NCBI GenBank assembly: GCA_030704615.1
Contig: CM060731.1
Location: 14,570,001 to 14,634,000 of the forward strand
DNA: 64,000 bases
Origin: Takakia lepidozioides
Lineage: Eukaryota; Plantae; Bryophyta
Direction: 5' to 3'
Position 1 is the first letter of the stretch; every line of letters starts with the position of its first letter. The notes beneath the pieces were generated by a model, which saw only the letters and a list, made by a program, of their open reading frames with translations, was not told where the DNA came from and did no database searches. A program made the position numbers and the translations under genes. Below are positions 4,876 to 64,000 of the stretch, one piece after another.

Positions 4876-7800
4876 TTACGGAGTGGTTGACCCTGCTGCA
4901 TCACTCTTCACTAACTGCAGGCAATAGAAACAATGCACATTACCAAAACAAACACAGACAAGTCCTACAATATTGCAAAGCAGTTAGTATAGATTTGTAG
5001 ACAAGATACTCACAGCAGTTGATTGGGACATGTCCAGCATCTCCAGCTTTCATGACCTTAGTATTAGCTCATTACTATTAGCTTAAATGATTAAAAAACC
5101 AACAGCTTGTAATGGAATTCAATTAACAAGGACATTGTACCAAAGAAACATCAGTGTGAGAAAAAACATGCTGTACTTCAGGGTTGATGCACAGTACCCA
5201 ACCTTCCACTAGCTTCAGTGAGGTAAAAGATAGCGCAGAGGAAGTAAAGAGCTAGCAAGCCAGGCTACATTTTTTTAAGTCCATTTTCCTAGGTCACAGA
5301 ACTGATTTATCCTGGATCTTCACTGCTATGCACCACGCATGTAATAATAGTATGGTGTATTTGTGGGAGTTACAGGGGACCATTACTCAGACAGAAGCAA
5401 ACCTTCATTGCTTGGCTTCCCTTACAGAAGCCGTATAGTACCCATCACCAGAACAACTGCTGGTTGTGAGCCAGCTGTAGGCTTTCCTCTCAAGTAAGGA
5501 AGGACAGTTTCTCCTACAGGTACCCACTTCTTTCCATGCCCAGATCATATTCACTATCTCGTCTTCTCTTTTCTCTAGCTGGTAAGGTGTATGCCCTCAA
5601 GATGGCTTCTGCGAAGCGTGGTACATGGAGTTGGGTTCTTGGTCCGTGATTTCCTGTGTGATGATTGTGAAATCATCAACAAGGAACCTCAGTACAAACA
5701 TAGTATTTGGCTGAGACTGATACTAAACGGCAGCATGAGGGCTAAGGACCTTTGTTGGATGTGTCTACATGTTTGCAGAGGGAGCCCTCAGTGTTGACGC
5801 TGATAAAGCCTTCGAGGTGGTGAATGCTAAGTTCCTTGCCAAAGGCCACGGGGTTTGATGCCCGGGTGGTCAAGGGTCTACAACAGGACGACCTCATTTG
5901 GGCTTTTTGGTGAGGATGAGCATAAATTCAACAGCAAGCGGCTTACCAATAGCCTGGAAGAGCTTCAGCGTTGACCTCTTTCCTCAGTGTGTCAAAGTCT
6001 TGGTTGACAGAACCAATATGGTACTTCTGGCCACTTTCTTGTCAGGACTGAGATCTAAAGATGTATACTTGACACTGCCAGATCTGTGAAATGTTCAATT
6101 TACAAGGTATAGAAAAATTCCAGAGGAAAGAGGTCAAGATAGAATGTCTAGGCCTTGAAAGAGGCTCTCCCACCCTTTATCAAACCGCTTTAAGATCTCT
6201 CCTCTTGCTTGGGTGATGCAAGAAGTGAGGTTGAAAGAGCTGTGGACTGTTGGGAGAGTTCCGTCACTTTTGTGGCTGATAAGATCATTAGAAGGAAACT
6301 GATTGTATACGGAAGAGCAGGGAGATGGTGGAGATTTTGGAGGGATGAGCACCTTATAAGGACGGCTGTAATATCAAAGATGACAGAGCTGTGGTCTAGA
6401 TATTACCAGCTGTGAAAAGCTGTAAATCAGCTAGTAAAGACTCTAGAAGAAAATATACTGGGAAGAGTTGACTGTGACATAAACTTGAACCACCTCGGTG
6501 ATAATGATAAAAAATTATGGTTGACCTTAAATCATTTGTCCAGGCCAAAAAATGGTCAGCAAGTACACACTTTAAGGAATAACATGGTTGAATTGGGAAA
6601 ACTTTTGAAACGCACTACAGCCTTCTTGGCCGTGAAGTAGTGAGGGAGGTTTCTAAAGAATGGAAGGATACAGTAGAAAGAACTGATCCCGATCCAAGCC
6701 ATCCCTGATGAACTGGAGTGTATCACGGAGGGATACAATATGCCCATTAGTTCTTCCGAGACTGCTGAAGCAATAGGCCATCTAAAGGGCTATAAAGCCG
6801 GTGGGTGTAATGGTATTGTCAACAAGCTATTTAATCATGGTGGCAATCCTATCGTAGAGGCCCTTGCCCTGGTTCAAGGTGAAGGGGGCTTCCCTTTAGC
6901 GGATTTTGCAGGTCCTGTGAGCTACTGTGAGTTTATTTCCATGCAAACAGGGGAAAGCAACGGATGGGTAGCTTACCTTAGAGATAAAGGCCTGCAGCTG
7001 GTCCTTAAACCTTTCATCCAAGGCTCGCTCTGCTACATCAAACACGAAGGTGTCGCCCTCATTGCCAGATACCTTCTCCCTCTGAATGTAGCTGCACATT
7101 GACAGGTGGATGAGCCCTTGTTGTTTGCAAGAAAATGTATGGTTTGGATGCTGAAGGGGATTTGTCCACATCCAGGTGAATCAAAGCAGTGCATCACTCA
7201 AGGATCTTGACAGTAATCACTTCCACTTACAAGCCCAGTTTGTAGACATTCCATTCTGACACTAGGCATGGAAAACGATGGACAACAGTTTGGGCTGGAA
7301 CCTTTAGTTTCCCAACATTCCACATCGAAACACATGTTCCCTCACCAATGTAGAACTCATCTTTCGCTATAGTCTAGCTGTAAGCATGTAGTTCCAGTAG
7401 GATGCTACACATACTGCGAGCGGGATCAACAGAATTGAGGGCATGTCTGATATATCTCTAGATCCATTCTGTCTACTAGGGGCTGTAATTAGCTCTCAAG
7501 AGGTAAAGAAAGGAAGAGATGTACATGCCACCCCTTCAGTGAGCATGCAATTCTGAATACTTGGGTGTCATCAGCTGCGTGCTTTTACTGGGGCAAGCTT
7601 GGCCCTACCTCATACCTTGCTGGACCAAAACCTAATAACTCCTGGACGGTGGCGATTACTTAGTCTTGAAAGTTCTCAAAGGCAGACAATCACACTAGAA
7701 GCTGTTGTGTCTGTTGGAAGGCATTTACAGCTTTATGTCCGAGTATAAAACGGCCCATGTAATCAAATCCATACCGTTGCTTGACAAGGGTCTCCATAGC

Positions 7801-9890: not shown

Positions 9891-10442
9891 ATGGCGTCGT
9901 CGTCAGAGCAGCGAGGCATACCTGCAGCGCCATTTGTGCAGGATGTGCAGTCCTTCTTGATGCAGTACAAATCGGACGCATCCATCGCGCTGTCGGCCCA
10001 GCAAGAGAAGCTGCAGCAGTACAAATTGGCAGAGATGAAGTTGCTAGCGCAGAAAAGGGATCTTCAAGCCAAGGTGCCTGACATGAAGAAGTGCTTGCAG
10101 ATCGTAGGGGCGTTGATCGCGAAGCAGGGTACTGGCGAGTCCATGAAGTTGGACTTTGAGGTGGCGGAGGGTATTTACTCGCAGGCACAGTTTGAGGAGG
10201 CCAATTCTGTGTGCCTGTGGCTTGGGGCAAATGTGATGCTGGAGTACTCGTGTGATGAGGCGAGGGATCTGTTGACGAAGAATCTTGAGACTGCAAGCAC
10301 GAATTTGCAAGCCATTGCTGACGATTTGCATTTCTTGCGCGACCAGATCACCATCACCGAGGTCACCATTGCGCGTGTGTACAACTGGGATGTGCATCAA
10401 CGTCGGAAACAGAAGTTAATGAAGAATGATGATTCAGCTTAG
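9891..10442 (+). CDS. PFD3: Prefoldin subunit 3 (VBP1), single exon
   Basis: [94 protein letters not shown]; uninterrupted ORF from ATG 9891. Confidence 0.95.
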
Positions 10443-11542
10443 CTATCTTCGCCCTCTCTTTTCGTGATTCACTTTCTTTTCAGACGCCCCCTGAGATTGG
10501 AAGGGGGATTCATGCGGAATGTAACCATAGAGGTCATCACTAGACGACAGAGATTCTAAATTTGTAATTCTTCACACGCCCAAGTCCCATCCTGTGAGGA
10601 TGCTCCGGTTTTGTTTTAGATTGTAAATTGTTGGCGAGAAGGTGTTGGACAGTATCATGCACAAAGTTCAATATGGCCTGGCGGTGGGGATTGAAAAGGT
10701 TCCATGTCTAAACCCTGACCCCTAACCTTGCCTTTAGCTTCTACACCATTCACTTGTTTATTATCTCAGAGTAAATTTCAGACACTGATGAAAAGTTTAC
10801 ATTATTTCCTGTGTGGATGGCAGTATTATTCAAGGTAGTCCCTTGTTTAACTCAGTTGCTGTACAGCGTTGTATTTTTCATCAGGGGCCAACCATCCCAG
10901 GGGTATTAGAAGAAACTCCGCTCTTTGTTATCCTTATGTAGCTGACTACCACAAAGCACAAGTGACACGGCAGGGAGAGGATTGAAGGTACTATTGCCTC
11001 CAATCGGATGGGCACCCTTGCAGTGAGCAGATTTAGTCACCACTGACGTTGCCATACAAAGTCTTCCAATTTGAGAGCTCTCAGCTCCAGATAAGGTTGT
11101 AGACAACATAATTGTACCCATGAAAATTGGTAATCTTGCTTTTAGTACTTTTCCATAAGAACCTTAATGCCATATCTGTTAGCATTTGCATAGCTGTCCA
11201 TTGACCGTTTTCTTTCAACCTTGAGATGGGCAAGCAGTAGCTTCCAAAGGGGTGGGAATTTGGTCCAAAGCCTTGCCCTTTCTTGGTCCAACTGATCCAT
11301 ATTGTTAAGGGTTTTAATGCCGTGAATGCTCCGGTGATCCTCTGTGGTTGGCTTATACTGCAGAAAGCGGCAGATTTGCATTTGAAATTGGTCACCTCAG
11401 CAGAGTAGCCCCTCTCCTTCCAATGAAACTGTTTCTTTGACGAGGGGGTAAGGGGTCAAATGCTGAAGTACAAGTCACCATAGGGATCAGACACCATTCC
11501 AGTCCCTTTCTTTCCTTCTGTCTTGCCTCTGCATATCCAACG

Positions 11543-11663
11543 TCCTTACTACCAACGTCAGCCCCTGACAGAGGTAGGTTCTGTCCCTTTTGTTGTTCCC
11601 GCTCAAACTGGGCGCGGGGTTAATGGCCACAAGGCTTCGGCAAACAACATCTTATGAGTACAA
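11543..11663 (+). mobile_element. 5'-truncated LINE family 1 3' end with a long target-site duplication
   Basis: Near-identical to 63813-63929; flanked by direct repeats 11509-11539 and 11664-11698. Confidence 0.9.
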
Positions 11664-12526
11664 TCTTTCCTTCTTTGTGTCTTGCCTCTGCATATCCAGG
11701 GTGATCTACCCGTCACAATGTTCTTCTCAGCATCTGTTGGATTCTCACCATTCCAATGGGAAAATTAATGGGCTCATTTGTTTTCATGCCATGGAGGTTT
11801 TACCACATGAGGCACTATACATCCTGTTTTTGGTGCACACCAACTCCCCCTCTTGTTAAACAGCTAGCAACCCTAGTTGAACTAAGCTGACTATGTTACA
11901 ATGTTACAGCCCACTTGGTTTTTGTCTTGGATATCTATAAATATTGAAACACATGACAAGAAATTTGAGTCCAGAGACCTGTTGCAAGCTTGGAAGTACA
12001 TGGCTGAGTTCTTGGGTCATGCATTACTTTGTCCTTTCTTTGGATGGAGGTATCTAATTGTCAAGTTATGAGGTGGCAGTGCTCACTAGGGTTACAGCTG
12101 GAGAGAGGAAAAGACAAGAAAGAAAGAGGGGTTTTAATATCTAGCAGATCTTAGATTGTACACGAGATATTTGCCCTTGTGAATTTTAGAGAGGGAGAGT
12201 TGAAGAGGTGTGGATTGGAGGCGGTTAAGACATGAACATAACTAGCTGGCTACAGCTTGTTGCTCTTCTCAAATGCGCACATGAAAGCCAATCATGCATT
12301 GTCCCTGAGAAACACATCTCACTTCTTAGGAAACAATTTAGACATAGGTGAGTGCTACTGAATGACAACGATTTACCTTGTCTCACTATGAGACAATGAA
12401 CTATATTAGCACCCTCTCCTGTACACTCTTTGTTATGATACCAGCGGCAATTGTTGAGGCTCAAATATTGGGAAGGAAGTAACATACAAAAGGAACTGTT
12501 CAACTCAAATCCTCAATATCCAACCC

Positions 12527-15500: not shown

Positions 15501-18500
15501 TGTGAAAGTATAAGTGACAATCATGCTTGTGCTGCATTGGATCTTTTGGATCTTTACTTCCCACCTTGAATGTACACAGCAATGATTGGACCCTTTCATA
15601 AATACCTAAGGGTGACCTTTGTAATCCGTGGGCATTGTCAGAGAGTCTCACAGACCTATCAAACTTAGACAGAACCGGGTACAGCGAGACATGCACATCT
15701 TCAATTGAAAAATGTAGGAGGAGCATGATGACCTGGTCAACCAAGTGTTGAGTGTCAAGCTTGGCAGCAGATAAGGCTTCTTTGTCTGTGAGTTTGATGC
15801 CATCAATCCACTCCATGGTCAGGATACCTCTGGTTGTAAAATCCCAATAGATCTTAGGAACCTTCACTGCCCCATCTCCAGCATCCCCATAGGGATCAGC
15901 ACTTGTCTCATCCCTCGTAGACTCCACTTGGGTGCCTTGAGGTGCACGCTTCACTTGGTTTGTAGGGCGGCCGTGTTCTGAGAACAAAATTGGCTCACTG
16001 GTATTACAAAGCAAGGACGCATTGACTTCAGTGCTTGACCTCTTCAGTCTCCTTTGCACACAGAACTGTACCCTGATTCCATGCCGCAAGCTTCAAAGTG
16101 TATCTTAATCAAAATACCATTCAATGGAGGCCAAGTTGAGGTAAGCCTTTAACAGCAAAAAGTCTGTACATAAAACCCACTGGGCTCAGTATGCAAGTAT
16201 GTGTCAACCATCTCTTTGTACACAATAGAGGAGGAGAGGCTTACTGGAGGCAGGCCGGAGGCCATAAAGTCGAGAAAAACGCTCTGCATTCCGCCCCTCT
16301 TGAAGGTAATCGACCTCTTCGAACATGTGCCCTGCCTGTGCTTCCAGTCAACAAGCCAAATGTACCAACATTAAAGCAGAATGTAGATTGATGCATAGTT
16401 TGATGCTGAACATTACAATATACCCTTCACGTTGGAACTAATAGCTGTCTGTTCTGTTTGTTCTGTATATGCCAAAGGAGGAGACTGATTCTTTCGGGGA
16501 GCTGTGGTAATCACCAGTTCATCGACAACAGCCACAAGGTCGCCACGCCCTCCAATGAAACGCTGCAGCTGGCCTCCAATCAGGCGCAAGAGATGGGCAT
16601 CCAGTGCTAATTGCTCCAAGATACCTGGCCTTTGTACTTTCACAGCTACCTTCTCCCCGGAGTGAAGTTGTGCTGATTTCTCCAGAAAACCCATGATCCA
16701 TTAGTTTCTCAGCAAAAGCTTGTCATGCATCAAACCAGAAAATTTAAGCTGCATCGCACAACAGCTAACCATAACAAACAACTGGAGGCAGCCGACTTGT
16801 CCAACATTGCATAACAACAGAATAGTATCTCAATAGTACACACTACTGGGACAGATGCATACACACAAAGAACAAATCTTGGCTTGCCAAGATTGTGATT
16901 AAAGATTTTAGTGTGCAAAGGTTGTTTTGGCTATTTTTTCTTCTACAAAATTAGCAAAGACATAAAAAAAACAAATGAAAAGAAAAACAAACACAGAAGT
17001 AAAGCAAAGAAAGAAAAGAAGAAGGAAGTGATAAATTTATTTGTCCAGGGTACACCCACAATGGACACAGTAAAACAACAGGAGAGGATGTACTGAGAGA
17101 GAATGTACACATAAGACATTTGCCGTAGCCTTGTGGATATAGAGTCGATTAACTTAGGATATCTGATGTTGGACATATGTTGCAGCTGATCCCACCATCT
17201 GACCTCGAATTCATCTCGTCGGGAGCTTAAAAGAAGGGATGCCAAACTCACCCTGAACAGCCACATTGGCTGTTTCACCCCCACTTGAATGGATTCTAGG
17301 GACTTAGCCTGGTTGGAGTTATCAACCCATATTGCAGATGCGTACTCCAAGGCAGGTCTAATAACACGACAAAGAACAGAGAGAGAGAGAGATTGTACTC
17401 ATAAGACGTTGTTTGCCGTAGCCTTGTGGCCATTGACCCCGCGCCCAGTTTGAGCGGACAGAACCTACCTCTGTCAGGGGCTGACGTTGGTAGTAAGACT
17501 AACCTTCATATATAGAATTAATCCGGGTTTTCCAGATATCCTCTAGAAATCCCTTCACACAAGCATCAATCTGCTGTGTGTGATTTGCCCAAAAACTAGG
17601 CCTCAGGAGGGCCTGGGCTTTTGGCTCAGCCTCGAGACTTTCAAAGGTTGGTAAACAGAGGTACAGAGGTACAGGCACAATTCCCTTGATAGATTTGAAG
17701 AGAGCGTCTCTTTGGTGAGAGAACCCCGGACAGTGTATCAAAAAATGAATACTGTCTTCAGGTTGCCCACACAACGGGCAATTGCACTCTCCCTTTCCTC
17801 TCTGCTTCTGTTTGCTGTTCAAAGGTAGGCTTCCTGCCCTGAGTTTAAATTTCAGTCTAGTGCCGAGAGTGGGTAGACCCTTGAGGTCATCCAAGATATC
17901 CTCCCCCATGTCACTGACTGGAAACAAGTTCAGGGAAGTTTTCTGCCTAACTTCATTTTCATCAGACAATCTCATGGCAACAGACATGGCTTTGGACACT
18001 ACAGCCTCTAAGTCAGATTTATCCAGCAGGGTCAAGACTTGCGGTTCCAGGTCCAGGTCCTTGAGAATCTCTTCTACTCTCTTCTGTCAGGACTTAGCCT
18101 GTTTGACAGGGCGGTCCTGTTTCCAAGATATAGAGTCGATTAACTTAGGATATCTGGTGTTGGACATATGTTGCAGCTGACCCCACCATCTGACCTTGAA
18201 TTCATCTCGTCGGGAGCTTAAGGACGGAATGCCAAACTCACCCCGAACAGCCACATTGGCTGTTTTGGAGCATGCTGACATACACTCCTTAAGCACCCCC
18301 ACTTGAATGGATTCTAGAGACTTAGCCTGGTTGGAGTTATCAACCCATATTGCAGATGCGTACTCCAAGGCAGGTCTACTAACACGACAAAGCATGGTTT
18401 TCTTAACCTCAGAGACCCCTCTGCAGTGGAAAAATTTAGTGAGCCCCAGAGCTTTGCCCTTGCCAGTTTGAACAACTTTCCGGATATGTGCATCCCATTT

Positions 18501-21500
18501 ACAATTGGAGGAAAACTCAACGCCCAGGTAAGTGTAGGAAGGGAGGACCGGGATCTCTTGGCTACCCCACTGCCACTTAAGATCACTTCCTCCCTCTCCT
18601 TTGTCGTTGAATGCTACCACTGCACATATGCTGACATTAGCCTCTAGCCCCCAAAGATCAAAGTATCTCTTCGCGCAATCAATCAACTCCTGGAGATTGG
18701 TTGGAGTCTCCCCTATGCCTGCGAAGTCATCCGCAAACATAAGGGCTGGTATGGTGGTATCACCCACCCTTAACCCAAATCCCTCACTTTCCACATCCTC
18801 AAGGAGTTGATTGATGAAAGCATTGAAGAGCAGAGGGGAGAGAGTACATCCTTGAGCTACACACTGGTATAAGTCAAAGAAGTTGGACTTCTGTCCGTTA
18901 ACAGTGACACAGCTTTTGGTGTGAGCATACAAGTTGTGGACAACTCTCCACATCTTTCCCTTGATCCCACAAGACCAGAGGCGGAACCATAGGCCATCTC
19001 TCCACACTGTGTCATAAGCCTTTTTGACATCCAGGAAAAAAACATAAGTGGGTTTCCCTTCTTTTTTCCTTCCCTGGATAATCTGGCTTAGAGTGAAGAT
19101 ATGATCCACACAGCTCCTGTTTCGCCGAAAGCCAGCTAGGCCTTCGTGGAAACAACCTCTAGACTCCAGATCAACCTCGAGACGAGTACTTATAACTCTG
19201 CAGAATGTCTTGCCAACAGCATTGCGGAGCGTGATGCCACGGTAGTTCCCCGGTTCTTCTCTGTCATCCTTCTTGTATAGATTGACAATGACCCCCTGTC
19301 GCCAGCGAAAGGGGATCATTTCAGTCTTCCAGATAACGTAAAGAGGAGAACTAGGGCCTCTATCATGGGATCGCCACCGTGCTTGATAAGCTCGTTGACA
19401 ATACCATCAGGTCCACCAGCTTTATATCCATTAAATGTTCAATTGCTTCCACAATCTCAGAAGAACTAATGGGAGCGTTATAAGCCATTGAAATGTACTC
19501 CAGTTCATCAGGGCTGTTTTGAATCATAGGAACAGTTTTTCCAACTGTGTCCCTCCATTCAGCAGAAGACCCCTCACTGTTAGACCTAGAAGTTCTGCCA
19601 AGGATACTGTAGTGAGTTTCAAAGGTTTTGACAATGTCAACCGATGAAGTCACCACTGCACCTTTAGTAGTCTTCAGCGCTTGTACTTGCTCACCATTTT
19701 TCGGCTTGTACAAACGTTGAAGGGCCAACCAGAATTTCTTGTCATTACCACCATGGTGGTTTGAGTTTATTTTACTGTATAACTTCTCCCAGTATAATTT
19801 CTTCTGAGACCTAACAAGCTGATTGATATCTTTATGGAGCTGGTAGTACCTCGCCCACAATTCTCTGTTGGTTTTCAAATTGCAGCACTCTTTATAGAGG
19901 GCTCGTCTCTCAGCTATCTTGAGTTTAATCTCATTGGTCCACCAATTAACAGCCCTACCGCAGACAATTAGTTTCTTCCCAAAGAGAGAGAGAGAGAGAG
20001 AATGTAATCGTAAGACGTTGTTTGCCGTAGCCTTGTGGCCATTGACCCCACGCCCAGTTTGAGCGGGAGAGAGAGAGAGAGAGAGAATGTACTCATGCGA
20101 ACGTGGGCTTGCCATAGCCTTACCGCCATTGACCCAGGGAGAAACCGGTTAGAGAGAATGTACTCATAAGACTCTGTTTGCCATCGCCTTGTGGCCATAG
20201 ACCCCGCGCCAGTTCGGACGGAAACATAGGGAATAGTTACTACCTTTGTGAGGGGCTCACTCCAATAGTAGGACTTACCATGATACGAACAATTAGTTCA
20301 GGCTTTCCCGATAGCCTCTGGAAAACCCTTAACACAAGCATCAAGCTGCTGCAAGTGAGCAGCCCAAAAGGAGAGAGAGGGAGCGAGGGAGATGAGTACA
20401 CCAAAAGTGCTCAGCTCAGTACTAAGGTTTTAGCCAGTATGACTCATGCACTGTGTAGACAAGTCAATTCCAACCCAAACACTAACCAAATAAAAACCCC
20501 ACCAGTGAAATCTAGTTCTCTCCAACCTAGGAACTATATGTATGTGGATGAAATACACTTGATGGCCAGAAAGATCAGGAAAGGGTGTACCTTTATACAC
20601 CTGGCCCAGAGATGCAGCGGCCACAGGTTCATCTGAGATATCCGCAAACACCTTCGAAGCAGGTGAGCCTAGCTGCTCCTCCACGTACTTCAGTGCTTCT
20701 GATGTAGGGAATGGAGGAATTCGATCCTTTAGTACAAACAAGCCCACAGACCAAACCATCGTTTCAATGCCCCACATTTACTGCCATAAAAACTCCTTGG
20801 CCTAGATACGAGAGCTGCAACCATGTCCATTTATGGTCACCTGGCAGTATAAAAATGGTTCTGAGATGTACTTTCCCAAATCTAGGGGATCGAATACATG
20901 CAAAGGAACATCGAGATGCACCACCAAAGGGCTGTTTGGGGCTTCCAGCAAAAAATTTAAACAAATTAACCTACTACGATTGGTAGTCTAGACGTACAGA
21001 TAAAGTGACAGCATCTCAGAAAATATTTGTAGTGCAACCCTCCTCAATGGTCAGATACATTACAGGTTTACTGTTGGACTCCAGTAATTGCTTGGCCAAG
21101 AAAGTGTTGTATGAGTTTAGTTAGTGTTTCAGAATACTAGATTCGTCTTTTCCAAAGCTCTGAAACAGAACTCATCAACCATCCACCCTACAATGGCATG
21201 GCCTACTATATTCAAATCAGATACCACTGAATTAAAAGGAATGGAGGTAGCCTGAGGTTAGAACAGACCTGCAGCTTTGCAAGCTCCAGGCAGTAATCAC
21301 TAGGTAGTATGTCGGGTCGTGTACTGAGTGCCTGGCCAAGCTACACCACCCACACCAGAGGGACAACAACAAGCACAGTTCTTAACGATGTAACATTACA
21401 GCAAACACAATTGATAACCACAGCTACAAAATTAAACATCTACCAGCCAGATATTTCCAAAATTTGGAACTCGAAAGAAACCTACTTTGATATAAAAGGG

Positions 21501-35202: not shown

Positions 35203-36918
35203 TCAGATTGCCGCCAAGAGTGTCAGTTTCGCCAGCATCGCCAGGGCTTTCGCCGTCGAGGCTTCAACCAGTATCGCCATATGCGTCGCCAGTATTCCCT
35301 CGACGATTCCAGCATCTCCAGTTGTGCGTGTGACGGATAATAAAGTCCGTCCATACATTCAATGAGATGTGGGGTGCAACGTTCCCGCCTCGGGGCTGCG
35401 GCAGCCACGTATTGAAGCCTTTTGAGCAATGGGCATGGAAACATTGTCGACCTCTTTCCATACTTTTGATCCGCCATCACTGCACTTCTTGTCCCCATTT
35501 ATTGACATTGAGTGCTAGTTAATGCTCACGAGGTGACGTTGCCTCGAGTAAGTTGTGTATTGGGAACCCAATCCCTAATGTGTGCTTCATCGCTTATTAC
35601 TAGTTCTTCCTAGGCCTTCGATATAACAAAATCTTGTCAGAGTTTGGTGTTGGGTCAGTGCAGTTCCTCTCAATATATGAAGAGGGCATCTTGATGGTAA
35701 GACATCTTGTGCATGACCTGTTCAGACTTCAGACTTCAGACCCCTGCGAGCTGACTCTCTCTGCTTGGGGCACTGCCCCTGTTTGCAGTGGTGGCCGAAA
35801 GGGGATTGATTTCTCCCTCTGGTGTTTCCTTGGAAATAAATAAAATGTTACCTTTCTATAAGCTGAGGCAAATTGCAGACATGATGACTGTCTTCCCTTC
35901 ACTCTATAGGCTTCACTATCCCTTGCTTGTCATCTCTAGTGTGCTAATACTGAATGAACTACGCAACTGACTTTCCTCCTCCATTCTCCCAAGCAGTCAA
36001 AGAACAGCATGCACTCCCTCTCTTTGGTTTAATTCAGCAAAATTCTAACTAACATCGTTCCTAATCTAAAACCCTAAGGCAGCATTGAATGTGGAATCAC
36101 AATGCTGGTATCAGATCAAAGCAGTAGCAGCAGTACTAAATATTCCATGACTTCAGGTCTACTGCACCACAAATGGAAGCACTGACTCTAGAATATCCTA
36201 TTTGGATTTTATTTTTCTTAAAGGAAACCTGGGATCTGGGAATATCCTGATTGGATTTCCATGAAAGATTTCAGATCGACATCTGGCCCACTACTATACT
36301 ACTATACCTGCTGATTATCAATATTGAGTCGCCAACATCTAGAAAGGTCCCAGGAGTTGAAGTTTCACACTCTCATTATGATGAAGGGGCCTGATTTATG
36401 AGCGGTCACTCACTCCTGGGTTTTCCTTTTTTCTTAATAAAATAAGACCCATAATTCTGATCTTTCTAGATCTTCTTTCTCTCTTTTTTACTTTTCAAAG
36501 CTAAAACTGGCCTCCATCCAGTTAAACAAAAAACAAAATGACTATATCATCAACCGTGCAACTCACTATGCAGAGAGTGTCCCATGGTGGAACTCATCAT
36601 ATAGTGTTTGGCGGGTATATCTTTTACTCAGGTACATATCCAGATATATAACCTGATGTAGCAGATCTTATGTTAATCAAAAAAAAAAAAAAAAGGTATA
36701 TCCGTACCCTACAGTATCGTTTTGCAGTATCAGCCAATCGAGATTAATGCACTACAATCCCTCATAAGCCATATCCCTCGCATACTAAGGTGGTGCTCTG
36801 AATCCTTCCACCACAGAAGAGGTTCCATCTACCAATAAGAGGTAGAAAGTCCCTACTGTGACAATTGGAACTTGCCTTCAACACATTTGATTGAAGTGAC
36901 TAAACACCAAGTTTTAAG

Positions 36919-37478
36919 AATGTACTCATAAGACATTGTTTGTAGTAGCCTTGTGGCCATAGACCCGGCCCCCAGTTTGGGCAGAAAGAAAGGAAATAGA
37001 CACTATCTTTGTGAGGGCTCGCTTCAGTAGTGCGACTTACATTGGTACAAACAACTAGTTCAGGCTATCCACACATCCTCTAGAAAGCCCTTCACATTCA
37101 CATCAATCTGCTGTGTGTGAGCAGTACACCCCAAACAGGGCCAGGGCTTTAGGCTGAGCCTCCAGATTTTCGAAGTTGGTGAACAGAGGTGCAGGAAGAA
37201 TGTTCTTGATGTTCCTGAAGAGCGTCACTCTCTGGTGAGAATACCACGGCCAATGTATCAGAAAATGGATATTGTCTTCAGGCTGCCCACACATCGGGCA
37301 ATTACTATCTCCTTTTCCTCTCTGCATCTGTTTATTGTTCAAAGGTAAACTCCCCGCCCCAAGTTAAATATCAGTCTAGTGCTGAGGGTAGGTAGGCCCT
37401 TCAGATCATCCTTGTAGTCATCACCCATGTCACAGACTGGAACCAAGTTCAAGGAAGTTTTATGCCCTAACTTCGTTT
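36919..37478 (-). mobile_element. Diverged 5'-truncated LINE family 1 copy
   Basis: CPMCGQPEDNIHFLIH..FTNFENLEAQPKA; family 3' end ..TTATGAGTACATTC; candidate ~9-bp TSD TCTTAAAAC. Confidence 0.9.
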
Positions 37479-37926
37479 TAAGAGGGTGACACAGAGAGTT
37501 TTGCAACATGACAAAGAAAGAACCTGTCTACTGCCTGTGACAAGGTCCCCTTTAACTCATGGGGTTACAGTTCACCTAATTACTTGCTACTTCATCTGTT
37601 AGGAGCAGGATATCTCACAGCTTCCTCATCCACTATGACTCTGTGCAGCCTTCCCTTACACCTCTGCACACAAACAGAAACAGACTTTTTTGTCACATCA
37701 CTAAGAGAGAGAGAGAGAGAGAGATGATTTCATGGCAAGAAACTAAGACACACAAACATGGATGACATCTACAGCTGCAAGTGAAAAGCAGAAGAACTGA
37801 GAAAACAGGGGAAAAACACAAAACAACAACACAGCCAAGTGCAAGTTCCGAGCCCTGCACAGCCTCTCTCCAGGAGCACAGAGGGCATAGTATTCAGCTG
37901 TGCTTGCCTCAGATAAAGGAAAGAAT

Positions 37927-37990
37927 ATGTACTCATGCCGTTCCCTGCAAACGTTGGCTTGCCATAGCCTTACTGCCATCGATCCCCCAA
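37927..37990 (-). mobile_element. Short 3' end of LINE family 1, B-type variant
   Basis: GATGGCAGTAAGGCTATGGCAAGCCAACG..CATGAGTACA resembles unit B (20087-20150). Confidence 0.7.
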
Positions 37991-38248
37991 GAAACTAACT
38001 GTACTAGAGTTTTTTTGGGGGTTCGCACCCATCAGGGTTTAGCTTATCCCTGCAACTCAGCTGCAGGTATTAACTTATTTTCCCACAACTGCCATGAAGG
38101 CGCTCACAGAGGCACCTGTCCGCGTCCAAACTTGACAGCCCAGTTGCAGGGTTATTGATTTTAGTTTTACAGCCCTCCGTTTACCACAGAAATGACATGT
38201 CTGTCACTCTGGATTGTGTGATAATGAAAGAGAGAGAGAGAGAGAGAT

Positions 38249-42902: not shown

Positions 42903-43074
42903 GTAATTGCAGCAACCTTCTGCCACCTCCAGTTTTGTAGTAAGAATCGAGCCTCCCTTGACATTGAAGGGACTGGCAGTGGTTTGATCTCCTACAAGGT
43001 ATTTCTGGTTTGTTCCTCCCACCGGAGAATTGCCTGTCCCCATTCTTCCCCATTCTGTCTATCAGGGGTTCTGT

Positions 43075-43365
43075 CTATCAGGGGAATTGTGCCTATACTT
43101 CTGTTTACCAACTTTGAAAGTCTCGAAAGCCCAGGCCCTTTTGGGGCATAGTTATTGAGCAAACCACACACAGCATATTGATGCCTGTTTAAAGGGATTT
43201 CTAGAGGATATCTGGAAAACCCGGATCAATTTTTTATTTCAAGGTAAGTCTTACTACCGACGTCAGCCCCTGACAGAGGTAGGTTCTGTCCCTTTGTGTT
43301 CCACTCAAACTGGGCGCGGGGTCAATGGCCACAAGGCTACGGCAAACGACCTCTTATGAGTACAT
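43075..43365 (+). mobile_element. 5'-truncated LINE family 1 copy
   Basis: Homologous to ~63627-63930; ends ..TTATGAGTACATTC. Confidence 0.9.
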
Positions 43366-46044
43366 TCGTTTCAGAAGGTCCTGTCTTTCTAACAGAAATA
43401 TCTGTAGCTTCCTTTTGCCCTGGAGCTGATCTCAAGTTCAATTCTTACGGTGTAGAGCACTCACAGGCCCACAGCGTTTTCCACCCTTGACTGCAAAATG
43501 TGCAGCTCTGGCCACCTTTTTATTCATAACTAAAGACATGCTCAGATCTTCAAAACCTGACCGTAGAATCCTCATTACTCCCCTACTTACACCGGGAAAT
43601 TCTTGGCATCTTACTGCTAGAATTGGAATCTTGTGGTTTTTGAGTCAGTATGAAAATTTCTACAACCTCTGCAGAGTAGGCACAAAATTTGCAAATCTTT
43701 CCATTATTCCTGAACGGCTTAGCCACTTGAAACCCAATCCTACAGGAAATGTGCCTATCATCATTATGGTGGCCACTTTCTCCCTAAATTTTATTTACCT
43801 CATTTGTATTGGTCGGGAAGGGGTCCATGATATTCCACACTTTGCCACCTTTCTTGGGTTTGAGACAACAATTCATGTGTTGTTTGCAATGTTGTTATGA
43901 TTCTACAGTTTTTTGGATTTTTTTCGGTTTCTTTGTTGTCGAGGAAGCACTAGCCCCAGAGGCGCAAGCAAATGGGCCTCGAGGGGAAATAGATTCCCTC
44001 CTGGCCCCCTAAGGGTGCAAAGAGATACCTTGCACAAGGGTTTGAAATTTGAACTCTCCACCCAACCATAGAAAACAAACAAGCAACAAGCTAGTCTTCC
44101 CCTTTGAGCTCTTCCTATTTATACTCAAGGTCTATACCGAGATTTAGCTGAGACGACTATAGCATAACTACATGCTCAAAACTTTCGAAGTTATTTCCAA
44201 CTGCTATTTTGGTAGTTTGACTTGAATCATTGCTAGTTTAAGCTAATTGAGGCTTAGCACTGAGGTTAACTATGACTTGTCAGTACTGCTATTATGGCAT
44301 TGTGACTTGTCATCACAATAACTCAAGAGTAAAAATAACTTGGTAAGGAGTTGATTTCCAACCGTTGCACATTTGTATGTGTTTTTGTCAAAAAGTAGGG
44401 AAATGGCGCTGCAGTTCATATTAAGATCGCCTAATACCGAGTTATTAGCCAACACGGGACCACTAGGAGATCAATTGGATAGTGCAGAGAGTGATATCTA
44501 GATGATCTTGGGATCAAATCTTGATATATAGTTGGGTGTGGTATGTTCTTCTTCCCTTTCCCTTGGGCAGTGTCCCATCAGCAAGCTTTCACTACAAGAC
44601 TAAAATGAAAGAGGTTATTTTTTCCTCTCACTATAATTAAGGGGCCTGATTTGTGAGCCGCTTCTTGCTCCCAGGTGTTTCCCTTTTTAAAAATAAAAAA
44701 TATCATGGGCAAGCCCTAAAGTCCAAGAGACCCTTTTCCAATATTGAGGAAGTACATTTTGGGTGTACTCTTTGCAGATCTTAGTACTTTTTAATGGTTT
44801 CAATTGCAATTAAACTTTTGAGAACATAGCCTTTCTTACATTGACAGTAGTTTCCGAGATATAGACTTTTTTAGAACACAAGGGTCATGTGAAATTTGGA
44901 GGGGCCATGGAAAGTTTACCCTTTGTATGCCAATCACAATTGGGCCATGGTTGGGCCCACTCAAGCGCCACATTTGTAAACTCTTCCCTTGGATCTAGAA
45001 TTTTCTTACCATTCTTACTATTGTGTTGCATTTCACATGCTCACAGGAAGGATTGAGTGAAACATCTCACTATCAAGGAGTCACTCTCACCATAGCTGTT
45101 CATTTTGGACATGAGTTCGGATAGCCTCTAAAAATGACAACTAAGGCTTGGCATGGTAACTCCGTACAAATCTAGTAGATTCCAACCATGAAACGTCGAG
45201 GCTAAGCTCTCCAGAAAGCGGTCCGAACCTGTGAACAAAACTCACTTAGCATGAATGTCTCGCCAAAACTATAATCAAATGAATATACCAACCTCAACAA
45301 GGAATAAGCTCATTTGATTGCTAAAACTTACTCACTCTCGCATTCCAATGAGCATTCATATTCATTCATATCCCTTAACATTCCAACATATCCAACCAGA
45401 TATTTGAAAACAAACACTATCTGACAAGAGTTTCGCATGGAGAGACTCATTTGGGAGAGAGAAGCCATGAAACACTCCAAGACAACTCATTTGTGACCCA
45501 TGAGCTTTACCGGATTAATTTTCTAGAGTAATTGTTTAGGTCATCCTCAACAAGTATACGACTACTAGATCGGCCAAATATGAAATGATGGGCACATGTG
45601 ATAATGGTCCTGATACCTTAGCATTACGAAAACATATTATGCTTCATTAAAATTCAGTATTTTTAGATATTTTTTATATCCTCCACCAAAGTATAGTCTA
45701 AAGAAATCGTTGACACACTTATGTGCCGGGCTTAAATCAAAAGACATGATTCGAATTAAAAAAATCAAAAATTGGATACAGCGCTGGAATAACGTACAAA
45801 TTGGATATACCAAACCTTTTCGCCTTACGGAAATCATTTCCTAAATAGAGTAATGTTGCAATCGTGGATAGATTAGATATCTCAAACCCTTTCGCAGCGC
45901 GGACGTGATCTATTCAACGAGACATATTGACAACTAGTTTTATTCGAATTATAATTATGGTGATATAGTGGAAGGGTTCATGAGGGAAAGTACGATAGCT
46001 AGATTTGATATCCCAACAAATAATAATTACAGATCCATGAGAAA

Positions 46045-57000: not shown

Positions 57001-60000
57001 TCCTTTTCTTCCAAGGAGGTTAATCTAAATGTTGTGTTCAAAGGGAGCGAGAGGGTTCAATAAGCCTTGAGGCCCGTTTCCAGGCAGCACGACTCTACTA
57101 ATTGCAGGCAGGACACCTGATAGTATGTGTTCAAGACTATGGGGTGTTTGGAATTGGCAGTGGCGCAGCCTTCTGCAAGACTGGCAGGAAGAGGAGGAGC
57201 TGTGGTGCTACAAAAGACAATGGCTCTCATTGAACGGGCTCGCAGACTGAAACCGCAGGAGGCTATCTTAGCTATTGAACTGGCTGACCAGCAATTCCTT
57301 GTAGGGGACTTCAAAACCGCTCTATCCACTTACAGGTATGTTTGAGAGAGAGAATTTGTCTCTCTGTAGCACTCCACAGTGATGAACCTACCAGAAGGGC
57401 AATGAATTGATACTTATAACGTCCACAGAAAGCTCAAAGAACTTCTGTGACAAGACAAAGCATGAGGCAAGAAATGAAATGAAATGGTGCTTTATAACGT
57501 CCACGGAAAGCTCATAGAGCTTATGGGACAAAATGGAAGGAAGAACATGAGAGAAAATAGGAAAACCAGAGTCAGAGAAAAGAACTATTGTTCGAGTGAT
57601 TGTCTAAGGGTGAATGCCTCGTGCAGGTAGGCTGCCAAACATTTCTGATCCTCGTAGTGGAAGGCTTCAGTGAGAGATTGGGTTCCACGGAATAGACAAT
57701 GGAATCTCCCACGGATCTCATAGTATAGGGGGCAATAAAGAAATGAAATGAAATGGTACTTTATAACATCCGCGGAAAGCTCAAAGAGCTGATGGGACAA
57801 AATGGAAAAAACATGAGAGAGGAAACAAAACCAGAGCCAAAAAACGGCCCAAAAGCAACTACTGCTCAAGGAATTGTCTAAGGGTCAAGGCCTCGTGCAG
57901 GTAAGCTGCCAAGCATTTCTGATCCTCATTGTGGAAGACTGCAGTGAGAGATTGAGTGCTGCGGAATAGACAGTGGAATCTCCCACGGATCTCATAATAT
58001 AGAGGGCACTAAAAGAAGAAGTGTTCTTCAGTCTCAATTTCCTGGTTGCGAGCTGGGCATAGGTGGTCCTCCCGTTGGAGGTTTTCCCATCTGCCAGTCT
58101 CTATCCATAGATTGTGGGAGCCCACCCTGAACCGCCCCAATGCCCTCAGGAGGAAGGAGATAAAGGCGCCGAAAGGTAATTGGGCCGAAAGATTCTATCA
58201 TCACAGAGAGCCAAGATTGTCTCTCGATAGAACTGGAGCTTTGTTGTGAGATTGGGTAGCTTCCGAGTTTCCTGACATGTAGTTCCATAAGTTCCCTTCT
58301 AATGAGTGTGTGCGATCCTGTTTGGATATGAAGGAGAAAGGAAATACAAACAAAGATTACAATAGGAGGTCAAAGGGCCCATGGGCACTCTGAAAGTACA
58401 AGAGAAAACCACCAAGAACACATCACACCCTCCAAAACTTGCTTTGGTGACGGAGTGCCTCATGATGGTGAGCTGCTAAGCTCTAGTCTAAGTAGATCAA
58501 GCGTTCTCTGGGCAGAAATCCCAGACTAGGCAAAGAGTAATAGACATGTCAATGCATTACTGAGTTCCTCATGGATCCAAGCACTGTCAGCGGGTATGAT
58601 TTTATGGTCAACTTATTTGCTTGCTTACGGGCATTTGAGAAGAGATGTCTTACCTAAACTTGTCTTTATCCAATCAAGAAATGAAATAGAACAGGCCTAT
58701 AATGCCTATTAAAGAATTAAAGCATAGGTTGGCAGCGCTGCTGGATGAGCTGAACATGGAGGCCGTGTATGGTGCCATTCAGTGCTTGCTTGTCCTTGGG
58801 GAGGTTGACGAAGCTGAGCAGCAGCTTGAGTTCTTGGTTGAGGTCTCCATCTCCACTGGCAAGTCTGCCAGTCTCTCCTATCTCATGGCCCAGTTAACCT
58901 GGACGAAGCACAAAGACCATGGCAGGTGTCAGGACCTTCTTGATGAAGCGATCAACGTCCATTCCAAAGTATGAAGTGAATTTTGTAAGGGTTCTTGCAA
59001 AATTTTACAAGAGATAGATCTAAATCACCACTGACCTGGTCCACACACCTAAGGAGAAAAGAAAGCATTACTAAAGTGGCTGTCAGTATGCCAACTGTGT
59101 TCTAAAGGTAGAGGACTATTTCAGTGGATTCTTCCGTTGGATTCTTCAGTTTCCTGTGTGGATGTCTGTGGCACAAATGCTGGGAAATTGTCTTCCGATG
59201 TGATAATTATGCGGACACATTGAACCATTGCATTCTCCATCTCTACTTGAGATTAGTGGCTTCCAAAATATTCAATATTCTGCAAGAACGTGTAAGCTCA
59301 GGCTCCAGTGGTGTAAGTTGGTATAAATGTCATCCTTAGCTCACATGAAAATTCATGCACCTGGGCTCCACATAATCCTGTCAAACCTCCACCATCGTTG
59401 CAGGCCATGAGACCAATCCATGACTACCAATTCTACACCGAGTTGAACCCTGATAGGCTACTTGGAATCGTGCACCTCTACATAACACTATCAAGATATG
59501 AATGCAAAGGGCCTCATGTTGAGAAAAGCTACTCATTGCTGCGCTGTGTGAGCATTCTGGAGCAGCTCCTATCTTTTGCACCAGCACTGGTGGGTGCCCA
59601 GCTCATGCTTGCCCGAGTTCTGGTGCACTTGGGGGAATCTGAGGCTGCCCAACGGAGCCTTCAAGCTGTCCTGGTTCTGGACTCTGGTTGTGCCAGTGCC
59701 CAGCTTTTACTTGCACAGGTTACTATCCATTTCTCGAAAAATTGCTGTGCTGTTGTTCAGAAAGGAAGTTCACAACTATTCCTGGCAACTGGCAATTGAT
59801 CTTGTTTCACCCTCTTTTAACCGAGAGGAGAAAGGTGGATACTGCTAGCATGGAGTTTTCATTTCATGAAATGACAGTACAAAGATGGGCTTTGCTCTAC
59901 AAATTAAATATAGCCTCTCCGGAGTAATCATGATTTTCTTACATGTAGGTGTATGTGGATCAAGGAAAATATGAAATGGCAAAGCAGAGCCTGGAACAAG

Positions 60001-62737: not shown

Positions 62738-62774
<37 letters not shown>

Positions 62775-62777
<3 letters not shown>

Positions 62778-63929
62778 TCCTACACTTACCTGGGCGTTGA
62801 GTTCTCCTCCAATTGTAATTGGGATGCACATATCCGGAAAGTTGTTCAAACTGGCAAGGGCAAAGCTCTGGGGCTCACTAAATTTTTCCACTGCAGAGGG
62901 GTCAACTCTGAGGTTAAGAAAACCATGCTTTGTCGCGTTATTAGACCTGCCTTGGAGTACGGATCTGCTATATGGGTTGATAACTCCAACCAGGCTAAGT
63001 CTCTAGAATCCATTCAAGTGGGGGTGCTTAAGGAGTGTATGTCAGCATGCTCCAAAACAGCCAATGTGGCTGTTCGGGGTGAGTTTGGCATTCCGTCCTT
63101 AAGCTCCCGACGAGATGAATTCAAGGTCAGATGGTGGGGTCAGCTGCAACATATGCCCAACACCAGATATCCTAAATTAATCGACTCTATATCTTGGAAA
63201 CAGGACCGCCCTGTCAAACAGGCTAAGTCCTGGCAGAAGAGAGTAGAAGAGATCCTCAAGGACCTGGACCTGGATCCGCAAGTCTTGACCCTGCTAGATA
63301 AATCTGACTTAGAGGCTGTAGTGTCCTCAGCCATGTCTGTTGCCATGAGATTGTCTGATGAAAATGAAGTTAGGCAGAAAACTTCCCTGAACTTGTTTCC
63401 AGTCTGTGACATGGGGGAGGACATCTTGGATGAGCTCAAGGGTCTACCCACTCTCGGCACTAGACTGAAATTTAAACTCAGGGCAGGAAGCCTACCTTTG
63501 AACAGCAAACAGAAGCAGAGAGGAAAGGGAGAGTGCAATTGCCCGTTGTGTGGGCAATCTGAAGACAGTATTCATTTTCTGATACACTGTCCGGGGTTCT
63601 CTCACCAAAGAGACGCTCTCTTCAAATCTATTAAGGGAATTGTGCCTGTACCCCTGTTTACCAACTTTGAAAGTCTCGAGGCTGAGCCAAAAGCCCAGGC
63701 CCTCCTGAGGCCTAGTTTTTGGGCAAATCACACACAGCAGATTGATGCTTGTGTGAAGGGATTTCTAGAGGATATCTGGAAAACCCGGATTAATTCTTTA
63801 TATGGAGGTAAGTCTTACTACCAACGTCAGCCCCTGACAGAGGTAGGTTCTGTCCCTTTTGTTCCCGCTCAAACTGGGCGCGGGGTCAATGGCCACAAGG
63901 CTACGGCAAACAACGTCTTATGAGTACAA
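62775..63929 (+). mobile_element. Young 5'-truncated LINE family 1 copy inserted in a (TC)n tract in an IFT139 intron
   Basis: Near-identical to 17393-18543; open frame to TGA at 63923; (TC)n at 62742-62775 and 63930-63943. Confidence 0.95.
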
Positions 63930-64000
63930 TCTCTCTCTCTCTCCTTTGATTCAGTTCCTCGGGACCTTCTCTTCCAACGGCTCCATAGAGTGGAAGTCCC

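Follow-up and report, generated by a model that had tools for sequence, protein, structure and literature searches.

The stretch of DNA analyzed here, hereafter the window, comprises 64,000 nucleotides of the bryophyte Takakia lepidozioides (GenBank assembly GCA_030704615.1, contig CM060731.1, forward-strand positions 14,570,001 to 14,634,000), and it contains, within one intron of an ABC1 kinase (ABC1K) gene, an array of truncated long interspersed nuclear elements (LINEs) that appear to be of the RTE-X type and that are joined to one another through (TC)n tracts. Coordinates are given in plus-strand numbering within this 64-kb window, the array itself being read on the minus strand, and all quantitative results refer to this single window, in which we recognized 10 3' termini of the TC group of elements and three termini of a second LINE family. 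The intron is bounded upstream by an exon at 20591-20732 (minus strand) that matches Pfam ABC1 profile positions 2-51 and ends at the donor AAG|GT (20591|20590), and downstream by an exon at 16515-16672 (minus strand) that matches profile positions 49-100, contains the peptide VAVKVQRPG and follows the acceptor CAG| (16673|16672). Joining this donor to this acceptor restores the ABC1 kinase reading. The original prediction had placed the array inside one ABC1K intron, and the profile matches of the two flanking exons bear this out. The array spans ~3.3 kb, or 84% of the 3918-bp intron, and lies in the gene-sense orientation.

Between 20369 and 17095 on the minus strand, five co-oriented, 5'-truncated LINE 3' ends (units A to E) follow one another head to tail. 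Each of these units terminates with ATGAGTACAWTC or a close variant of it and is followed by (TC)n, and the following unit begins directly after the tract. Unit A (body 20369-20156, 214 bp; tail TCTCT, 20155-20151) is a 3' end from an old and diverged copy. Unit B (body 20150-20085, 66 bp; tail (TC)9, 20084-20067) belongs to another family and has only the terminal module in common with the others, and unit C (body 20066-20000, 67 bp; tail (TC)8, 19999-19984) is a 3' end of the same subfamily as D. Unit D (body ~19983-17391, ~2593 bp; tail (TC)6.5, 17390-17378) is a 5'-truncated RTE-X-type LINE. Unit E (body ~17376-17101, ~276 bp; tail (TC)3, 17100-17095) is an internally deleted copy in which D positions ~1599-1864 are fused to ~2562-2606, with internal deletions of ~700 bp and 27 bp.

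A BLAST comparison of D with the window and an alignment of all 3' ends showed that the five units have one common 3' end and different 5' cut points. The terminal 38-nt pattern was matched six times in the window (0 expected) and the terminal 14-nt motif 10 times (~1 expected), and the TC tracts of the array were recovered both by Tandem Repeats Finder (TRF) and by a regular-expression census. On the evidence of the minus-strand sequence, the BLAST matches and the 3'-end alignment, the earlier description of five co-oriented copies chained via (TC)n was correct in all particulars.

Both edges of the array carry additional sequence of the same character. Directly upstream of unit A lies a degenerate TC-rich tract (20370-20391, minus strand), and a search upstream of this tract for a LINE end found none that was recognizable (z <= 2.5); the tract is probably what remains, on the upstream side, of the original target tract. 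As a separate observation, the 9-mer ATGAGTACA has an exact inverted copy at 20392-20400 (plus strand), which adjoins this TC-rich tract on the strand opposite to the array. At the other edge, directly after the tail of E, positions 17081-17094 (minus strand) read AGTACATCC and then TCTCC, which is the terminal 9 nt of the element again plus a TC stub. Judged from these few bases, this segment might represent either a very severely truncated sixth insertion or a local duplication.

Unit D is the most complete member of the array, and its contents identify the kind of element involved. It contains the linker between the endonuclease and reverse transcriptase domains (EN-RT linker), the reverse transcriptase (RT; 18516-19274, minus strand; Pfam RVT_1, E 5.2e-30), a C-terminal CCHC zinc knuckle (C-x2-C-x7-H-x4-C in the translation; 17730-17786, minus strand) and the terminal module. 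Its closest database matches were Ectocarpus proteins. The RT of D is 56% identical over 238 amino acids (E 3e-86) to P0034, a copy of RTEX-1_Ec32 whose aligned segments agree with the published RTEX-1_Ec32 consensus; the Ectocarpus RTE-1/2 consensus is, by eye, far less similar to the D RT, and the Protein Data Bank (PDB) entries for L1 ORF2p and R2 scored merely 62-74 bits against it. The 5' end of D is EN-RT linker and matches RTEX-2_Ec32. All copies in the window are 5'-truncated and the window holds no endonuclease domain; the homologues P0034 and P0035 carry PF03372 and PF14529. A CCHC-type motif occurs at the equivalent position in RTEX-1/2_Ec32 and in a more distant relative (L001), the spacings in RTEX-1/2 not being identical to those found here. 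The terminal peptide is GRGVNG in the Takakia element, RGRVVNG or KGRVVNG in Ectocarpus, and VVNG in L001 and in a second relative, L038. These comparisons support the assignment of the element to the RTE-X type, a membership that is transitive through the Repbase-based classification made by the Ectocarpus authors. The RTE-X-like label given by the original prediction is upheld by this RT similarity and by the agreement of the linker, CCHC motif, terminal peptide and near-terminal stop codon. RTE-X annotations exist already for Marchantia and Chlorella.

The 3' end of the element is nearly all coding sequence. An intact C-terminal open reading frame (ORF) at 62925-63923 (plus strand), which belongs to a solitary copy described below, ends in a TGA 8 nt before the end of the element, so that the 3' untranslated region (UTR) is very short or absent. 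Unit D itself is dead: its frame is shifted at two or more places, stop codons interrupt it at 18087-18089 (TGA) and near its end (TAG), and 14 bp are deleted. The relatives L001 (6720-6780) and L038 (5030-5095), each found at one place in public assemblies, keep the terminal coding module (VVNG and the following stop within CATGAGTA) and have (TTA)n-like tails. Across the window element and these two relatives, the terminal ~50 nt stay coding-conserved in very distant hosts and the tail repeat varies. A scan of metagenomes for the exact 21-nt terminal motif gave 0 matches, a scan for a degenerate 23-nt version of the module gave 36 matches, all of them chance occurrences on prokaryote-like contigs without a LINE end, two of these loci coming from gut metagenomes and none entering the further analysis, and a search of the array against Rfam gave nothing above threshold. 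An old fragment of another RTE-X-like family lies at 6293-6864 (plus strand); it covers the EN-RT linker region, is 37% identical to D in amino acids and 70% in nucleotides, and no 3' end was recognized for it.

We compared the units with one another and with the solitary copies elsewhere in the window. Compared with D, A was 78% identical, E 86% and C 94% (66 nt), and A likewise shared 78% identity with the old solitary copy that ends at 36918. Against D, the solitary copy that ends at 63943 had 96% identity over 1.2 kb, rising to 99-100% across its final 200 nt. Among the units, pairwise identities ranged from 61% to 94%, lengths were ~214, 66, 67, 2593 and 276 bp, and no 5' breakpoint was common to them. 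The array therefore has none of the three features expected of tandem duplication, namely equal unit length, common breakpoints and uniform identity; the last two had been named in advance as the outcome that would speak against separate insertions. Because length, family and divergence vary from unit to unit, we regard the units as independent insertions. From the alignments, they appear to come from at least two families and to fall into two or three age classes, and divergence suggests a likely order in which A inserted first, E followed, and C and D then came to lie between B and E. The proposal that subfamilies of different ages had used one site agrees with the range of identities to D (78-94%) and with the origin of B in another family.

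The B-type sequence recurs outside the array. A solitary B-type copy at 37923-37995 (minus strand) begins at the same element position as unit B (GTTTCT...), which suggests that the B type is a ~70-nt non-autonomous element rather than the product of random 5' truncation. The 11-mer TTAGTTTCTTG from the B-type 5' end is also present at 37725-37750, just upstream of a (TC)10 tract (37704-37724), and by this resemblance the sequence at 37725-37750 may be a deletion derivative of the B type.

The solitary copies indicate where the (TC)n of the array comes from. One D-type copy (62742-63943, plus strand; body ~62776-63931) lies inside a stand-alone tract, with (TC)17 on its 5' side (62742-62775) and (TC)7 on its 3' side (63930-63943). 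The 17-mer (TC)7-CTT is common to both junctions and constitutes a repeat-only target-site duplication of 14-17 bp; no recognizable LINE end was found upstream of the (TC)17 tract. The other D-type copies lie outside such tracts. A 125-bp copy (11511-11698, plus strand; body 11541-11665) has no (TC)n tail and has a target-site duplication of ~30 bp that begins TTTCCTTCT, with TC just before the duplication in the target. An old copy (36911-37479, minus strand; body 37479-36918) likewise has no (TC)n tail and has the target-site duplication TTAAAAC, just before which the target reads CTC. In both of these copies, the TC before the duplication overlaps the final two nucleotides of the element. 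A further copy at 43074-43367 (plus strand) also has no (TC)n tail; separately, a 16-bp direct duplication (TTCTGTCTATCAGGGG twice) at 43053-43084 (plus strand) spans its 5' junction and takes in the first bases of the element.

All three D-type copies outside tracts (ending at 11665, 36918 and 43367) stop at ...ACAWTC without any (TC)n, and the solitary B-type copy, ending at 37923, is likewise outside a tract and without a (TC)n tail. We considered (TC)n as an element-encoded tail and rejected it, given these tailless copies. Since off-tract copies are tailless and one copy lies inside a stand-alone (TC)17 with a (TC)7 duplication, the (TC)n is target-derived. A duplication made only of repeat leaves more tract after insertion than before, and the copy at 62776-63931 gives direct support to the earlier suggestion that each insertion regenerates or duplicates its target. 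The window contains eight (TC)n tracts of at least 6 units, four of them after a LINE terminus, one before a LINE 5' end and three unrelated to LINEs, so such tracts also arise independently of the element. When the remaining (TC)n tracts were examined for decayed LINE ends on their upstream side, nothing significant emerged except the 11-mer TTAGTTTCTTG described above.

The use of (TC)n is a preference and not a strict specificity. A TC tract is associated with six of the 10 TC-group termini; the remaining copies, ending at 11665, 36918, 43367 and 37923, are off-tract. All six copies associated with a tract carry TC on the sense strand of the element. Tracts of (TC) or (GA) of at least 3 units, both orientations counted, make up 1.3% of the window, and the probability that at least five of 10 insertions would fall in such tracts under random insertion is P ~8e-8, a value that indicates only an order of magnitude because chain members are not independent of one another.

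Another LINE family of the window has the same habit with a different repeat. At 57401-58310 (minus strand), three nested, 5'-truncated copies are joined via (CATTT)n tracts at 57739-57755 and 57470-57485, and (CATTT)n matches the 3' end of this family itself. The three chain copies, which are the only copies of the family in the window, are mutually diverged (~80-90% identical by eye). The family has a CCHC region of its own and a 3' UTR longer than that of the TC family. A tblastn comparison of the second family with the TC family detected no protein similarity, and we do not claim the second family as RTE-X. That two families each stack via their own repeat argues that specificity follows the 3' end of the RNA.

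Taking these observations together, we consider it likely that the array was produced by several separate RTE-X-type retrotransposition events into one TC-rich tract in the intron, each duplication renewing the landing pad. In the mechanism that we envisage, the element RNA would end in ...GAGUACAWUC, essentially without a 3' UTR, and target-primed reverse transcription would start at a site at which the terminal UC can pair with the nicked bottom strand and which reads TC|T on the top strand. A (TC)n tract would supply a TC|T site every 2 nt and on one strand only, which would make the tract a hot spot and would fix the orientation of insertion. Second-strand cleavage 7-30 bp downstream would then give the target-site duplication, and within a tract this duplication would itself be (TC)n. 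Each insertion would be flanked by tract on both sides, leaving the landing pad renewed or enlarged, and frequent 5' truncation would leave most units as short 3' ends. On balance we lean toward pairing between RNA and target, rather than an intrinsic preference of the endonuclease, as what sets target choice. A fuller version of this proposal is more tentative, and we judge it rather less likely than not: the site would be chosen mainly by pairing of the last nucleotides of the RNA, sister families would gain (TC)n or (CATTT)n as their repeat through a change of 3' end, and the landing pad would enlarge itself.

Several points weigh against this interpretation. Units C and D are inseparable in age (4 versus 0 differences over 66 nt), and identity to D confounds age with subfamily difference. 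Insertions within a chain are not independent for statistics, and the evidence consists of one 64-kb window with 10 TC-group and three second-family termini. The copy ending at 43367 has no clear target-site duplication. Finally, with no endonuclease domain in the window, there is room for a specificity encoded in the protein.

This last point leads to the strongest alternative, in which the same sequential insertions took place and the endonuclease itself encoded a preference for such TC|T and (TC)n sites, as is assumed for elements of the Kibi type, with no role for pairing. Sequence-specific LINEs of the APE type exist (PMC3812793), and the off-tract copies have a microhomology of just 2 nt, which is weak for pairing alone. 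Ectocarpus RTE-X elements, however, have a (C)n tail and C-rich duplications (PMC12477816), and the second family chains via another repeat, one in agreement with its own 3' end. In every case the specificity equals the element's own 3' end, for which pairing is a simpler account than repeated co-evolution of the endonuclease. We regard an endonuclease-encoded preference as possible and rather unlikely.

A second alternative would reduce the array to one event, in which the reverse transcriptase jumped between templates and concatenated several RNAs head to tail. LINE reverse transcriptases are known to jump templates, and C and D show no clear age difference, so this account could hold for the C-D pair; it could hold for that pair only, as A, E and D differ by 14-22% and B comes from another family. 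In addition, the off-tract copies without (TC)n indicate that the RNAs lack a long (UC)n, yet 6-9 TC units stand between units, and the copy in the stand-alone (TC)17 represents true targeting of a tract. We therefore judge template jumping very improbable as the origin of the array.

Tracts of (TC)n.(GA)n can adopt non-B DNA, and insertion might on that ground have occurred without the endonuclease at a fragile, H-DNA-forming polypurine-polypyrimidine tract. Such insertion predicts random orientation and no family specificity, against which TC is on the sense strand in 6/6 tract-associated copies; the (CATTT)n used by the second family is not a polypurine-polypyrimidine tract, and the clear duplications elsewhere (9-30 bp) point to ordinary endonuclease-dependent insertion, leaving this account with scarcely any credibility. 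Least credible of all is tandem duplication at the DNA level, unequal crossing-over or repeat mis-assembly, which has the tandem appearance in its favor and nothing else, and which is opposed by the unequal lengths, the 61-94% identities and the lack of a common 5' breakpoint reported above, since coincidence of the 3' ends alone is the signature of 5'-truncated retroposition.

Stacking of separate insertions at a reusable site accounts for three local features of the genome. The ABC1K intron has grown from 640 bp to 3.9 kb, long (TC)n tracts are associated with LINE ends, and sense-oriented intronic LINE debris with polypyrimidine tracts is present. In the intron, sense-strand polypyrimidine tracts lie at 17095-17102, 17378-17392, 19983-20001 and 20067-20086 (minus strand), and one of them is followed by CAG at 17095-17093; by their composition, the polypyrimidine tracts of the array are potential cryptic splice acceptors. 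The locus is also a compact natural case in which a LINE's preference for sites like its own 3' end can be read directly from sequence, together with a repeat-copying duplication that makes the site reusable and the co-oriented accumulation of families of different age. If the RNA rather than the protein sets the preference, a change at the 3' end would retarget the element, which would bear on the evolution of site specificity in LINEs and on tools for RNA-templated insertion. If the pairing proposal is true, the element would amount to a safe-harbour system of natural origin, programmed by RNA and self-amplifying, which would also seed microsatellites and fill introns in the sense orientation.

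Elsewhere in the window, a prefoldin subunit 3 gene occupies 9891-10439 (plus strand) as a single uninterrupted ORF of 183 codons that is apparently intronless. Its product is 75% identical to that of Sphagnum, 74% to that of Diphasiastrum and ~70% to that of Marchantia. These identities place the host with land plants of bryophyte grade, and on this ground we rejected a brown-algal host, an idea raised by the Ectocarpus matches of the LINE.

The separate components of this behavior have close precedents, as (TC)n-specific LINEs, self-targeting arrays of 3' ends and a correlation between tail and target in the RTE clade are known already; a literature search turned up no account of a plant RTE-X element that stacks via (TC)n. 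The nearest relatives are the Ectocarpus RTE-X elements, which have a (C)n tail and C-rich duplications and of which the non-autonomous RTEX-N1_Ec32 "can be present in tandem" (Genome Biol 2025, PMC12477816 supplement 3). The Takakia element resembles RTEX-1/2_Ec32 in clade, EN-RT linker, C-terminal CCHC, terminal G-R-(V)-V-N-G and an ORF that extends almost to the 3' end, and it resembles the Ectocarpus group in having a duplication like its tail and, as RTEX-N1 does, in occurring in tandem. It differs in that the repeat is (C)n or C-rich in Ectocarpus and TC|T or (TC)n here, and in that the host here is a land plant; the tandem habit in Ectocarpus, moreover, is an annotation remark that was left unanalyzed.

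Entry into TC microsatellites has been described for Kibi, a group of (TC)n-specific fish retrotransposons that lack long terminal repeats (non-LTR; Kojima and Fujiwara 2004, as summarized in PMC3812793). The likeness lies in a LINE that enters such microsatellites, Kibi being of the APE type. Kibi belongs to the Tx1 group, and the RT here is of the RTE-X type and not Tx1; here, too, there is a preference only, with 4/10 copies outside (TC)n, and microsatellite flanks on both sides are not universal.

Arrays of a comparable architecture are formed by L1 elements of green algae, both Zepp and Zepp-like ones, which, by the account of the original work given in a later paper, insert at existing copies and build tandem arrays whose members are for the most part 5'-truncated 3' ends (Higashiyama 1997, described in PMC8226300). 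Both families in our window resemble Zepp in their co-oriented arrays, in the prevalence of 5'-truncated 3' ends and in insertion at the ends of earlier copies. Zepp elements, in contrast, are of the L1 clade, have a poly(A) tail and form chromosome-scale centromeric or telomeric clusters, whereas the array described here consists of RTE-X elements with a TC terminus and (TC)n tracts and is small and intronic.

A relation between tail and target has also been reported for both LINEs and SINEs (short interspersed nuclear elements) of the RTE clade, in which the duplication begins with a nucleotide that matches the microsatellite-like 3' tail and pairing as reverse transcription starts has been proposed (Nishiyama and Ohshima 2018, PMC6007223; PMC13295347). 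The targets of Bov-B "rarely" resemble its 3' repeats (Bov-B study 2026, PMC13295347); in the Takakia window, by contrast, whole tracts identical to the 3' end of the element have been used repeatedly.

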